DNA of 64,000 bases from Octopus sinensis (Eukaryota). The stretch lies in contig NC_043003.1 in assembly GCF_006345805.1 (NCBI RefSeq), forward strand, positions 109,678,001-109,742,000, written 5' to 3'. Under the pieces are notes generated by a model that saw nothing but the letters and a program-made list of their open reading frames with translations, searched no databases and was not told the DNA's origin. Below are positions 20,357-44,300 of the stretch, one piece after another. Positions within the stretch are counted from its first letter, which is position 1. Each line of letters opens with the position of its first letter. Both the position numbers and the translations under genes were made by a program.

Positions 20357-23300
20357 GTGAGTAGACAACATTTTCTTGTGTAGTAAAGCAAATTAATGAA
20401 CTAAAATAATGATAATAACGAATATAAAAAAAAAACGAATGAATAAATATTAAACGAACATTCACACTAATATATAATTGTGTAAGAATATGAAGCAAAC
20501 AATCTTTTATATGTTTGAAGATTCTGTTCTTTTATCATCATATTTGTATTTTTGTATTCTAACAGAATTCTTTTTAGATGCCTGTAACTTTAAGTTCCCT
20601 TAATTATTATACTACTCACTTTTTGAAAGCGTATTTTGTCTCTCTGTACATTCTGGTGTTTGGAGTAACCATGCTACATAAAATAGTTGTGTACTTTGTG
20701 GTAAAACAGCTGGCTAGTTTCTAGCCCCGTTAAAGCTTCATCAGTGAAAAGAATACTCTCCTTTTTATTAGTTTGTTTTCCAACTGTGCGATAAAATCTG
20801 AATATAACCACTTTCTTTGTTTTTTTTCAGTACAGGCTAAACAGTCTAGATTGTATATTTATTAAGAAAGTATGCTTATACGCTGCATTCCAAATTATGA
20901 AACCACAAAAAGAAAACCAAGGAAAAGAAAATGGTGTCTAGTGCACTATGAATTTGTTACATACACATACTCATACACTCACACACATATATATGTAGGG
21001 CGTGAGAGAGATAGAGAGTTACAAGGGAAACACATTTCTACTAATAAAATACTAAGATTCATATTGTTAATGAAATCATATTAGGATAAATATAGCGAGC
21101 AGCTGCAACAACAAGTCTAACACGTTTTTAATCTGTTGAAAATTTCGAACGTCATCTGGTGTTGACACTAAACCATCGTATTATTTTCATTGACATAACT
21201 TGTTACGATGTCTCACATTTAAATAGAAATTCTCCTTCATCTTACAAGAAAGAATAGAAACAAAAAGTGATTTTTCTAATCTATTATTGCACTGATGCAA
21301 ATCGATGTGTTAATTTGATTATCCCATCTAAAAACATCTCGAAATTTTTAACTCGAATTATTGACGGAAACATTTGTTACCAATTCTATAGTGTACGTCT
21401 TATGAGTTAGTTTAATAAGTAGGAACCATGGATAAATTGCTTTAGTGCGGTTTCATTATAAGTATCCAGATCGGTGCGGATTCCTCGGAGTTGAGTTTGC
21501 CACTTTTCCAGGAACAATGAAAATTGTATCTGAGATATTAAACGGGCGATTTTGTTTCTCATTCCAAAATTAAAAGCAAAATGTCTAAAGACCAAATGGA
21601 TATAATCAATATTTCTAAATATACGAATGTATTATTCGTGTTTTTTAAATTTTTTTCCTTTGTTGTTTTAGTTCACATAAATACGAATTAGAGTTAAGTC
21701 CAAGTCTTTAAAAGATATTTTCACACTTCCTTTTCGTTTCGAATTTGTATTTTTTGTTTAAATTCTTGTATTTTCTTTGATATATCCAGCAATTAAATAA
21801 AATCATTTTTTCTTAATTTCTTGTTCTATTTCACAGTGAGGAACAGACTGAGTAAGTATAGTAATAGAAATATAGATGAAATCTTTAATGCCCTCTCCTT
21901 TTTCACCACTTTCAAAATGCACGTTGACTTGTATGGTAGTTTAATTAACGAATGATTTTCTTATTCTAGTCTTAGTCAGTTTTTACCAAAATCCATCTTA
22001 AAGACTTTCATTGTTCTATTTCTTCCTCTCACCTTACACTCGTCTATGCAATTCTTTTAGTTATGTATATGTGTGATACCGACAACAATCGATATAGAGA
22101 AAGAATGTAGTAGAAGAATAATTTTGAAATATTAATTTATCTTCTGTGATAACTAAGCACACAAATTATTATTTTTGGATTCACTTAATACGATTAATTA
22201 TTTAATAAGATTGCAATATGTGAGCCACCATAATTCAGACATTAAGATCGACGAACAAAGAATTTTCAGGAAATAAATTATATTAAAAAAATAATTGCAG
22301 ACGATAATGTAGTTGAAAAGAAATTAATCAAGATTTAATAGAAATCTGAAAAAAAACAACAACAAAACAAAACCGCAAAGAAGCACAATAGAACAAACAA
22401 TACAATTAAATACAGCAAAAAGAAAAGAAAAAGAAATCATTCTGCTACGAAAAAGAAATAATTTTGATCGTTAGACATATTACATAAAAAAAATTAAATG
22501 CAAATCTATATTTTTGTTTTCAATAATGGAATCGCATTATTACGCTAAAATCGAAATATATGTTTTGAGATGTAGAAATTAAGCTCTGGATCATAATGTG
22601 TCTTTTCGTAGTAAAGACTGCACTTTCTTTAGAGGAAGCTTGATTGAATTTTTTTAGAGTCTTATTTTTTTCTATAAAATACTCTATTTAGAAAATTAAA
22701 TAATTAAGTTTATAGCTTGCAGAAACAATCTTTGAGTAAAAGTGTATAACCGTGAAGTGAGAGTGACACAATTAATCCAACTAAATTATAATTACTGAAG
22801 CGGTATACTGGGAAATAAATACATTTTTATTAGGCCGATCTAATGAGAAAGAATCTCATACAAGAAAATGAAGTTTATTGTAATGCATTTTATATAACTT
22901 AAAGACGATAATAATTAAACAAAATGCCACATAATTTTCATTTGTCAAAAATCTAACTTAGAATAATGAAAAATAAAAAGGTAGCTAACCCCAAGACCTT
23001 TGACTTACTCAGTATGTCGACAAATAGTTGATGCTACTTACTTTCGGGACTTGATGAGTTCGACTTCCAGAGAGTTGCCTACAGTTCTTTTGCTCAACAG
23101 TTGTTTCCGAATCAAGTGAATAGGATAAACATATCTTTCTAAATAAGACTTCAACCTGACGCAGATAGCATTGCCCAGTTACATTATTACCTCTTTCCAG
23201 AAGCCATGAACGGAAGTCATCTGGAATTGAGCATTGTGGCCAGAATGTATCTGCAACGGATCAGAAATCAAGGATTATGACCTAACGGAGCAACACCTCA

Positions 23301-41300: not shown

Positions 41301-44300
41301 TACAATAGTTGTGTTTATTTACAGATCAACTGGTGGCGATGAAGGAGCCGGATCGTAAGTTGGACTTTTTTTTAGACTGATTACGACAAAATGTAGTTTG
41401 TAGATATAGAGAAAATATGTCCGACTTTTCTCTATTCATCCTTGCTTATCTTTTTCCGCCCACCAACTTTCAATTAATTTTTTTCATTCCTATTTTTCTG
41501 TTAACACTTGCATATGTAGCTATAGATAGTCTGAGTTTGGTTTTACTTCCAGGTGTTGTGTTTTTTCTTTATTTTGTAGCCTATGAATATACACGTAGAA
41601 TGAAAACGATAAAAAAAAGATCTGCAGTGATTTTGTAGTTAGTGTTTAAATCAAATTCAATTGCATTGTAACTTAGTTTTGGGGCTTCAAAAGAAAATCA
41701 GTTATGACGGAAGTATTAGATTTCAATTTCAGAAAAAAACACACATCACGTATATTCTAAAGAATCAAGTAGAATGTGTCTATGGTAAAGTGATAATACT
41801 CATTTCACTATTTTGTTTGTTTTTTCCAACTGCAAAAATATCTGAGATATCGGTAGGTCAACACTTGTTTTCCTCTCAAATTTCAAAGTATATTATGGGA
41901 AAACACACTGGAGTTGTTTTACCAAAGTAAATAAGATAACTTGAAATTAACATTAAAAGTGAACGAAATACTCTTTAATTTGACTATGCTCCTCCCAGTA
42001 CTTGCAGCTTTGATTCGAATCTATTCATGATAGCTATTTAAAGTTTGCTGGACCGTTATGACCTAAAGAATATTTGTTAAAGACATAGTATAGCGTTGAA
42101 CTTAGGTCTCTTATTCTGTGACAATATGAATGACAGGTAAAACCTAAATGAGTCGTAGAGTCGCCATCAAAGACTTTCTTTTTATGTAGTAACGGAAATA
42201 ATTCATTCAAGCAGAGGTCAGCTTTCTTTAGAATGCCGGCTTTGGTAGAAACGTATAGTCTTTTGGTGAATATTATATTGAAACATGGGCTGGAAACTGA
42301 ACTAGTGTCCAATACAAAGCGAGTGGCTTCGTAGCATTCAATGATGCACAAGGTAATATCTATACTATACTTTTAAATAGTTTAAAATCAATATAGATTC
42401 GAATCTTACGTACTCAAAGAATTTTAACGTTCTTTACCAACATAAATATTGTCTCTATGCTTATAATACATTCAATAAGATAGATTTACTCAAATTCTCG
42501 AATTTATCCAGTTTACATTCATCTAATCACTCACAATCTTTAGGAAATTTAAAATTACCTGTAACAAATTGTTGTTACTGTATATTTATCTTTAAAGGTA
42601 GATAATTAGCAGAAGGAAAAGCCAGCATAAAACGTTCTTCTTTGAAATAGAGTCGAACTAAATGTTTGTAAGTAGAGATGATAGAAACCAATAAATTTAT
42701 TATTAATCAAGAATTCTTGAGGTATTCTTTGTAAATATAAATTTATACTTTAATGAACAGGTATGTTACATAAGATATATTATGGAGTGCCTCACATCTA
42801 TATTAACTTGAGCAACAAGTTCATTAATGTAAACAAATTCTAAGCTCAGAATACTGTGTGCCTGTGTTTCAGGAAATCAGTAATGACACTTCGTATACGA
42901 AGTCTCACAGATACAGTTTAAAAATAGAGAATTACCGAAAATTACTCTGAAACAGAAAAATATGCATTTCGGACAATTTTGCAATCTGGTTGCTAAACAC
43001 ACATCTTTGTGAATAAATTGCATAAAGTACACACCATAACCAACTAAATGCTTTTTCTATTTACAAAAGAGAACATTGTCACTAAGAGAGAAACTCTTTT
43101 CGCACAGCTTTATACATTTATCCATTTTGCTCTGTGTGTATGCCTACACATTCACATGTGTCCGTCTGTACATCTGTGTGTCTGTACATCTGCGTGTCTG
43201 TATATATGTGTGTGACGATAATACACTTGTATATACTGGCATATATAGAGAGAGACACATACAGGAAAATACTTACATATATAAATTGTGTATCAGAACA
43301 AAATATGTTTAGAGAATGCTTGGAAAGTGTATTGATTGACGTAATGTAGCATAAATTTTAATCATTTTATAGTTACTGCTTTGTATTCTTGTGTTGTGTT
43401 GGTAGAAATTAAGTAATTCATAAATTATCTTTATTTTTCTCTAGCAAGCTAACTCCTTTTTACTAATAAATGTATGTTATATATATCTTATGAATTGAAG
43501 TAATTTTACTTTCTTTTTCATAGGAAAATACTGTTTAATTTTGTATTTTTCCGCATAGTCTAAGATTTAAATTAATATATTTTTTTATTATTAAACTTGA
43601 CTTATTAATTCATAAAGTTTTCTCGTTTGAACTTATAATCTATTTCTTCTTCATTCACTTCATTTGCTTCATGTTTATTTATTTATTCATATTTCATTCT
43701 CACACTAGAACAACCCTTTGTTATCGGGTGATACACTCTCCAGTAGATTTATTCTATATTTCACTATATCTTGCTACAGAATCTGTCTAGGTCTAGAAGT
43801 TTGAATATTTTGTTTGCTTCAACATTTTTTATTAATTTTAACCCGAGATAACAGAGTATCTCCGCTTCCTCAACTCTATTCATCGCCTAAAATGGTGTAG
43901 ACGAAATAAAAATAGGAATGTAATAATAGATTATTATTCAGCGATTAAATTTTATTTAATTAATAAAGTTTTTAGTATCTATTTTTGTTTTCTTGCTAAT
44001 GCAGGTCGTTCGAAGGAGATGAGGCTAAAGTCAAGATGGAGGTAAGTATTTCCGTTTTTTTCTGTCGTATGAATGTTCCTCTCAAAGCAAATTTTAATAT
44101 TCCATAGCAATCGCTCTTTTGAGCCAAAGTATCTTTGTGGGGAACCATTGTTTACGAAGCAGCTCATTACCATAATCATTGACAACACCAAACTATTATG
44201 GAAATCTTTAATTTACTCATAATGACGAACTTAGCATCTACGGTATGTATATGACTTGAGTATGGAATGAGATCCACTTGCCAGAAAACGTAGCAAGATT

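Follow-up and report, generated by a model that had tools for sequence, protein, structure and literature searches.

An enlarged array of N-terminal microexons, probably including cassettes, in a predicted troponin T gene of Octopus sinensis

The alternatively spliced N-terminal mini-exons of troponin T (TnT) are a textbook case of combinatorial splicing, and the vertebrate set formed by exons 4-8 plus a fetal exon of fast skeletal TNNT3 is said to have been described by Breitbart et al. in 1985. Here we describe a comparable array in a stretch of 64,000 nucleotides (nt) of the Octopus sinensis genome (contig NC_043003.1, positions 109,678,001 to 109,742,000 of the forward strand; hereafter the window, with positions counted from its first letter). 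Between the start-codon exon and the conserved body of a predicted mollusc TnT gene lie eight exons of 15-30 nt, probably joined by a ninth, which most likely represent an array of TnT mini-exons that goes back to a spiralian ancestor and was enlarged in this lineage, with some of the units serving as cassettes.

In human TNNT3 the alternative exons at the N-terminus belong to a single class of phase (PMC2447309), and TNNT3 exons 4-8 and the fetal exon resemble the array in the window, as both form a 5′ series of small exons in a single phase class that encodes an acidic, hypervariable N-terminus. The vertebrate TNNT3 peptides are, however, more Glu-rich, and the combinatorial isoforms of TNNT3 have been demonstrated experimentally, whereas alternative use of the units in the window is predicted. 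Vertebrate cardiac TNNT2 also possesses N-terminal cassettes, exons 4 and 5, whose isoforms vary in size and charge, but these number just two against eight or nine here, and their regulation by MBNL and CELF has been shown, while the window displays a weak, non-independent enrichment of YGCY. The N-terminal exons of Drosophila upheld (TpnT), which reportedly include a microexon of 3 nt (attributed to Benoist et al., 1998), are another case of small exons close to the N-terminus in an invertebrate TnT; they are muscle-type-specific alternative exons in the fly and fewer than those in the window. The Glu-rich exon 3 of Drosophila TnT depends on Muscleblind (PMC2238819). Insect TnT furthermore ends in a long Glu-rich C-terminal tail, whereas the protein of the window has a short acidic one. 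Isoform differences in thin-filament Ca2+ regulation are known only for vertebrate TnT (PMC4012202). Arrays of the Dscam1 type share with the window the tandemly duplicated paralogous exons within one gene, but the array described here is heterogeneous and comprises no fewer than six unrelated exon sequences, docking/selector complementarity was not found in the window, and its cassettes, each a multiple of three nucleotides (3n) long, would be freely combinable.

The DNA of the window is metazoan, AT-rich (33.8% GC) and rich in microsatellites, and its positions 20310-56510 (+ strand) are predicted with confidence to hold a mollusc troponin T gene. The gene model was built from mollusc relatives plus tblastn, and a scan for ATG exons that end in phase 2 before a GT[AG]AG donor left one plausible start. 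With all eight microexons spliced in, the product has 393 amino acids (aa), of which residues 210-288 match PF00992 (Troponin) at E = 2.7e-11 and 44.3 bits, the curated cut-off being 26.2. A protein search with the 200-aa core as query yielded 286 matches at E <= 1e-5; the named relatives among the 120 best matches listed, from gastropods, bivalves, flatworms and a nemertean, are all troponin T and none is TnI. Identity is 55-74% over 98-100% of the core, with 55-65% for the mollusc TnTs, which are the best matches, so that the troponin T identity given in the initial annotation holds. The array and the two exons that flank it are as follows:

20310-20356, + strand: ATG exon; coding part 20337-20356, 20 nt, encoding MDEEDH + AC and ending in phase 2
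21837-21851, + strand: microexon 1, 15 nt, phase 2-2, (T)EEQT(E)
24227-24250, + strand: microexon 2, 24 nt, phase 2-2, ESPASGF
27289-27315, + strand: microexon 3, 27 nt, phase 2-2, QSTEETSQ
28070-28099, + strand: microexon 4, 30 nt, phase 2-2, ETVEEPAAP, copy A of a paralogous triplet
31279-31305, + strand: microexon 5, 27 nt, phase 2-2, ETVEEHTP, copy B, from which 3 nt are deleted in frame compared with A and C
32191-32220, + strand: microexon 6, 30 nt, phase 2-2, ETVEEPPAP, copy C
36489-36515, + strand: microexon 7, 27 nt, phase 2-2, VTTEVPSN
41325-41354, + strand: microexon 8, 30 nt, phase 2-2, STGGDEGAG
44005-44041, + strand: 37-nt exon, phase 2 to 0, encoding SFEGDEAKVKME, the first conserved exon, which closes the variable array

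Each of the eight exons has a pyrimidine-rich tract plus AG before it and GTAAG(T/A) after it and is no longer than 30 nt, the upper limit for a microexon; together they amount to 210 nt or 70 aa. The coordinates, AG acceptors, GTAAG donors, 3n lengths and 2-2 phases that had been proposed for them were all confirmed on the + strand, and both proposed flanks, the ATG exon ending in phase 2 and the 37-nt exon at 44005, were found, the latter restoring phase 0 and being spliced to the 117-nt exon at 47566. The GC content of the microexons is 0.44-0.57, compared with 0.31 in the surrounding introns, and the EEQT of microexon 1 agrees with the gastropod N-termini MSEEEQTV. Situated after the start-codon exon and ahead of the conserved T1 region, which binds tropomyosin, the 21837-41354 segment is predicted to code for the acidic, Ser/Thr/Pro-rich N-terminal hypervariable region of TnT.

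The frequency of such segments was assessed with a scan for a pyrimidine tract plus AG, 12-45 nt and GTAAG, in which the enclosed stretch had to be 3n, open in phase 2 and of GC >= 0.44. The region 20357-44004 contains eight matches, whereas 200 first-order Markov simulations of this region averaged 0.135 and never exceeded 2. The same scan gave no match on the whole reverse strand and none on the + strand at 1-20300, and three at 44042-64000, where a broader scan recovered at least one segment corresponding to a real exon, that of 45 nt and phase 2-2 at 53745, and another inside the 150-nt exon. When the GC filter is omitted, approximately 1.8 3n-open candidates are expected by chance in the array region from the splice pattern alone.

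The same architecture was encountered in three other spiralian TnT genes, those of an oyster (locus L003), the flatworm Schistosoma (L004) and the gastropod Lymnaea (L005), whose annotated proteins were placed on the loci one exon at a time by means of an exact spliced mapper:

Magallana gigas (L003), array: the ATG exon contributes 29 coding nt and ends in phase 2; three phase 2-2 mini-exons (18, 45 and 30 nt) follow, then a 34-nt exon restoring phase 0
Magallana gigas (L003), downstream: exons of 117, 87, 150, 213, 41, 42 and 37 nt and the last exon
Schistosoma turkestanicum (L004): the ATG exon contributes 20 coding nt and ends in phase 2; two phase 2-2 mini-exons (30 and 12 nt) follow, then a 37-nt exon and exons of 117 and 87 nt
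Lymnaea stagnalis (L005), partial model: begins within a phase-2 exon of 48 nt; two phase 2-2 mini-exons (42 and 30 nt) follow, then a 37-nt exon and exons of 117 and 87 nt

The exons of 117, 87, 150, 41 and 37 nt in the oyster are identical in length and phase to those of the window gene, the 20 coding nt of the ATG exon and the 37-nt exon recur in Schistosoma, and the exon at 44005-44041 is orthologous to the 37-nt exons of Schistosoma and Lymnaea and the 34-nt exon of the oyster. The arrays of all three species follow the same 3n, phase 2-2 design and encode acidic, Pro- and Thr-rich peptides alike in kind. This common architecture implies that the array was inherited rather than invented independently, and we regard the mini-exon array as orthologous across at least Mollusca and Platyhelminthes. 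At L005 411-428, upstream of the Lymnaea model, lies an unannotated 18-nt phase-2 exon (AGAGGCAGGCGGGGAAGA, preceded by tttcag and followed by gtaagt) that encodes EAGGEE; the public Lymnaea stagnalis TnT model evidently misses 5′ microexons and the ATG exon. In the oyster, isoform X14 contains an extra 9-nt exon (ETE) at L003 9152-9160, between the 150-nt and 213-nt exons, i.e., a microexon of the linker region.

What distinguishes the window is the scale of its array. It comprises 8-9 units, compared with three in the oyster, at least four in Lymnaea and two in the Schistosoma model; its mini-exons measure 15-30 nt, against 12-48 nt in these species; the distance from the ATG exon to the 37-nt exon is ~23.6 kb, against ~3.9 kb in the oyster; and a recent tandem triplication of the ETVEEP exon sets it apart from all three. 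If all units were included, the DEAK..ME motif would lie 81 residues into the protein, whereas in 85 other spiralian TnTs this offset has a maximum of 62 and a median of 20, so that the potential N-terminal tail exceeds those of all 85. The lineage-specific part is, on this comparison, taken to be an expansion from about 2-4 to 8-9 units. The initial annotation had called the array an independently expanded equivalent of the vertebrate and insect mini-exons and had proposed an exon count in bivalves: the expansion in copy number stands, given the tandem duplications and the three cassettes of the oyster, but the independent origin does not, given the architecture shared with oyster, Lymnaea and Schistosoma.

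The nearest relative of the window protein is encoded by a Tara Oceans metatranscriptome contig, ERR1719347 (L001/L002; JGI 3300019002; gene at 118-1161), with 74-80% identity; it is the one match with the lineage-specific YERLTDH signature (SKYERLTDHRSYGER). Its N-terminus, MGDE-MDPGKVLE (MGDEMDPGKVLE), starts 12 nt upstream of the called ATG and is without cassette-like sequence. Its C-terminus carries an (EEAPA)n-like acidic tail that resembles the ETVEEPAAP exons of the window.

Since all units are 3n and of phase 2-2, any subset of them can be spliced in frame between the ATG exon and the 37-nt exon. The microexons end in GA, AT, TC or AC, never in TA or TG, and all combinations are therefore free of stop codons; computation gave 256 of 256 stop-free (512 of 512 with the ninth unit), each with a distinct peptide, in agreement with the 256 N-termini and up to 70 additional residues calculated earlier. 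The residue formed at a junction depends on the partner exon (AT+G yields Met, AT+A Ile, and GA+N either Glu or Asp), and the predicted N-terminus up to the conserved ...KME ranges from 19 to 89 residues, with a net charge of about -6 to -25. Use of all 256 combinations is unlikely.

Microexons 4-6 lie within a tandem segmental duplication, which was delimited by alignment and by repeat families D6-D17:

27502-34282, + strand: tandem segmental duplication behind microexons 4-6
about 27502-30469, + strand: unit A
about 30729-31660, + strand: unit B, truncated
about 32131-34282, + strand: unit C

The units are 73-91% identical, with start-to-start spacings of about 3.2, 0.9 and 3.7-4.1 kb, and copy C is 90% identical to copy A over 70 nt (the exon together with the 25 nt before it and the 15 nt after it). 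Amid these repeats the AG and GTAAGA of the ETVEEP exons are intact in all three copies, and the changes within the exons are synonymous (GTG/GTC/GTT, GAA/GAG), conservative or, in copy B, an exact 3-nt deletion. The identity of the splice-proximal introns between the paralogues (~86-90%) is not above that of the rest of the duplicated unit. From these alignments the three ETVEEP exons are judged to be copies of one unit that arose by tandem segmental duplication. Several microsatellites occur in their vicinity, a (GA)n tract at 31975-32143 that ends ~50 nt before the exon at 32191, a (GT)n tract at 27959-27978 ~90 nt before the exon at 28070, and (TA)n plus (CTAT)n at 36886-37032 between the exons at 36489 and 37352; microsatellites near the duplicated microexons may represent duplication breakpoints or promoters of unequal crossing-over.

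A candidate for a ninth cassette was found by the same scan without the GC filter, 836 nt beyond microexon 7:

37352-37378, + strand: candidate ninth cassette, 27 nt, phase 2-2, DTTEVSNT, acceptor tcctttatttgtAG, donor GTAAGT

Across exon and donor it shares 23 of 27 positions with 36496-36522, with equal length and phase and some upstream similarity, and its GC content of 0.37 is above that of the intron (0.31) and equal to that of the constitutive 117-nt exon. Because of this paralogy, equal length and equal phase with microexon 7, a chance origin is unlikely; on balance we narrowly favour the view that it is a cassette, paralogous to microexon 7. Both of its splice sites and its open frame have been kept, although its flanks can barely be aligned to those of the copy at 36489.

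Alternatively, some of the units, that at 31279 and above all that at 37352, may be decaying, unspliced duplicates or pseudo-exons, so that the functional array would be smaller. We consider this possible but doubtful. It would account for the lower GC content of the 37352 unit and for the change of four of its eight residues relative to the 36489 copy, unit B is indeed a truncated copy, and the splice-pattern scan is itself expected to return the ~1.8 chance candidates mentioned above. However, in both 31279 and 37352 the AG, the GTAAG(T/A) and the open frame in phase 2 persist, the indel of 31279 is exactly 3 nt, the splice sites of 37352 are perfect despite nearly unalignable flanks, and its peptide is still acidic and Ser/Thr-containing.

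For the use of the units as cassettes, the annotated isoforms of other molluscs are informative. Among the oyster isoforms, annotated as X1-X18, three cassettes occur in X1, two each in X7 and X8, one in X13 and none in X14; X1 and X14 fit the genomic locus exactly, with all three and none of the cassettes, respectively. Annotated isoforms of periwinkle, abalone and scallop vary in the same N-terminal region. Cassette use is consistent with the symmetric phase, with the way the junctions are designed and with splice sites that persist in diverged duplicates, and it is quite probable that at least some units undergo alternative inclusion in Octopus sinensis.

Several observations weigh against this preferred reading, i.e., an enlarged ancestral array with some units used as cassettes. 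One-to-one orthology of single cassettes between molluscs could not be traced, as alignment of these low-complexity peptides is uninformative, and the 113-aa N-terminus as protein query gave no match in the collections searched. All eight exons have very strong GTAAG donors and good pyrimidine tracts, which are compatible with constitutive use. The Rbfox motif GCATG was not found near the exons, with none within 150 nt of any microexon, TGCATG is not enriched window-wide (46 occurrences vs 34.6 +/- 6.2), CELF-like and PTB-like motifs in the exon flanks gave no convincing regulator signal, and the MBNL-like YGCY is ~2x enriched in the flanks at P ~0.02, a value that is uncorrected and derived from paralogues that are not independent. 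Finally, squid arm and tentacle myofilaments show remarkably few differences on sodium dodecyl sulfate gels (SDS-PAGE; PMC4757648), which argues against large muscle-specific shifts in TnT size, at least between arm and tentacle; a TnT shift of 7-8 kDa should be visible on squid gels if present. An excess of UGUGU (CELF-like) was also considered as a regulator signal and was rejected, as it is the (GT)n microsatellite carried by the paralogous units.

The strong splice sites, the lack of a clear regulator motif signal and the similarity of the squid muscles would together favour a scenario in which all eight or nine microexons are constitutive and form a fixed long tail of 89-98 residues, the 3n, phase-2 symmetry being a leftover of the duplication of a symmetric exon. 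This is nevertheless unlikely: annotated oyster, periwinkle, abalone and scallop isoforms leave out orthologous cassettes, a fixed tail would place the conserved DEAK..ME beyond the range of the 85 spiralian TnTs, the transcript of the nearest relative has no cassette-like N-terminus, and the lack of TA and TG endings, which leaves every junction open, fits selection on skipping.

Mutually exclusive splicing finds its classic substrate in tandemly duplicated paralogous exons. Tandem paralogues of near-equal length make up the ETVEEP triplet (28070/31279/32191) and the pair 36489/37352, and the members of each set might be mutually exclusive, in which case isoforms would be far fewer than 256. 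A palindrome, TTTTCGAAAA, directly after the donor in copies A and C could point in the same direction, but it is broken in copy B. Such exclusion is improbable here, as the exons are 3n, so the reading frame enforces nothing, and the introns between the copies of 885-3179 nt make steric exclusion inapplicable. The introns of the array are at least 754 nt long, and docking/selector pairing among the duplicated units was not detected, the inverted matches being just microsatellite and AT-rich sequence. The oyster look-alike neighbours EEVTDA and PEEVTF..., moreover, occur together in isoform X1. The weakest explanation, that the eight segments are chance matches to the splice pattern inside one long intron, draws on the shortness of microexons, too short for single statistical proof, and on the many AG and GT dinucleotides of this AT-rich region, but it is effectively refuted by the eightfold occurrence where 0.135 is expected, by the empty reverse strand and upstream 20 kb, by the single phase, which is the one that the flanking exons demand, by a GC content 13-26 points over the intron level, and by the agreement in position, phase and size class with annotated mini-exons of three other species.

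The remainder of the gene conforms to the TnT pattern, as the exons downstream of the array show:

47566-47682, + strand: body exon, 117 nt
48961-49047, + strand: body exon, 87 nt
49732-49881, + strand: body exon, 150 nt
51793-52002, + strand: body exon, 210 nt; its end at 52002 is supported by the KRQQKD/LIELAERARQ junction in the nearest relative (Tara Oceans)
53370-53410, + strand: body exon, 41 nt
53745-53789, + strand: body exon, 45 nt, phase 2-2
55293-55329, + strand: body exon, 37 nt
56283-56510, + strand: last exon, containing the stop codon

At the 5′ end, the coding sequence of the ATG exon is ATGGACGAGGAAGACCATAC, directly followed by gtgagt; the start codon stands in the context AGCCATGG, with an in-frame TAA 15 nt upstream, and the acceptor at 20309/20310 implies that a 5′ untranslated exon lies further upstream. 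In 1-20300 no convincing protein-coding signal was found, just open reading frames (ORFs) derived from microsatellites. At the 3′ end, ~260 nt of A/T- and pyrimidine-rich low-complexity sequence (56014-56271; poly-I/L/Y in translation) directly precede the last exon. Within that exon, a GTTAGT at 56364, after ...DLYEK, could serve as an internal donor. The oyster has an alternative C-terminus, INAIEKINHLQRGDIPMNSQNDLID, from a separate downstream exon (L003 about 11905 and 13312-13389), and its switch point, directly after ...LFEE, is the equivalent of ...DLYEK in the window. Rfam families and tRNAs were not detected in the region on either strand, and the longer intronic ORFs contain no Pfam domain. 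Downstream of the TnT gene, an 84-aa ORF at 60619-60873 (- strand) with a Mos1/mariner transposase helix-turn-helix (PF17906, E = 4.9e-09) represents a transposon fragment; the ORFs beside it at 62156-63978 gave no Pfam match.

The enlarged ancestral array with some units as cassettes suggests how the N-terminus of this TnT may be varied. The eight, probably nine, exons would build an N-terminal tail in any frame-preserving subset, the array having presumably grown through tandem duplication of segments made up of exon plus intron, from about 2-4 units to 8-9. Judging from the oyster, periwinkle, abalone and scallop orthologues, inclusion of units would set the length and charge of the tail. 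If vertebrate TnT is a guide, the acidic tail would bind no known filament partner and yet alter the conformation of the TnT core, and core conformation would in turn affect how strongly tropomyosin, TnI and TnC are bound and hence Ca2+ activation; since the tail alters core conformation in vertebrate TnT, variation in its length and charge would grade activation.

In kind the feature is already known, as it is like the cassettes annotated in oysters, periwinkles, abalones and scallops. The full exon-by-exon model recovers 8-9 microexons which would escape annotation based on ORFs or homology, and the region provides a clear, datable case of the growth of a cassette array by tandem segmental duplication. 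An architecture common to gastropod, bivalve, flatworm and this genome would date the array back at least to an ancestor shared by molluscs and flatworms, and whether the vertebrate and insect arrays are homologous to it becomes directly testable. A far-reaching extension would hold that this is the largest invertebrate TnT array, with nine units used combinatorially for muscle-specific tuning of the thin filament in place of an apparently absent tissue-specific tuning of myosin (PMC4757648), and that the phase-2 architecture is ancestral to Bilateria, the vertebrate TNNT exons 4-8 and the insect mini-exons being homologous to it; this we regard as speculative and, taken as a whole, rather unlikely. 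In cephalopod muscles, myosin heavy-chain isoforms have been reported not to be tissue-specific (PMC4757648). If the cassettes of Octopus sinensis are differentially used, they would thus be a candidate for tuning at the thin filament in muscles where myosin isoforms are reportedly not tissue-specific.

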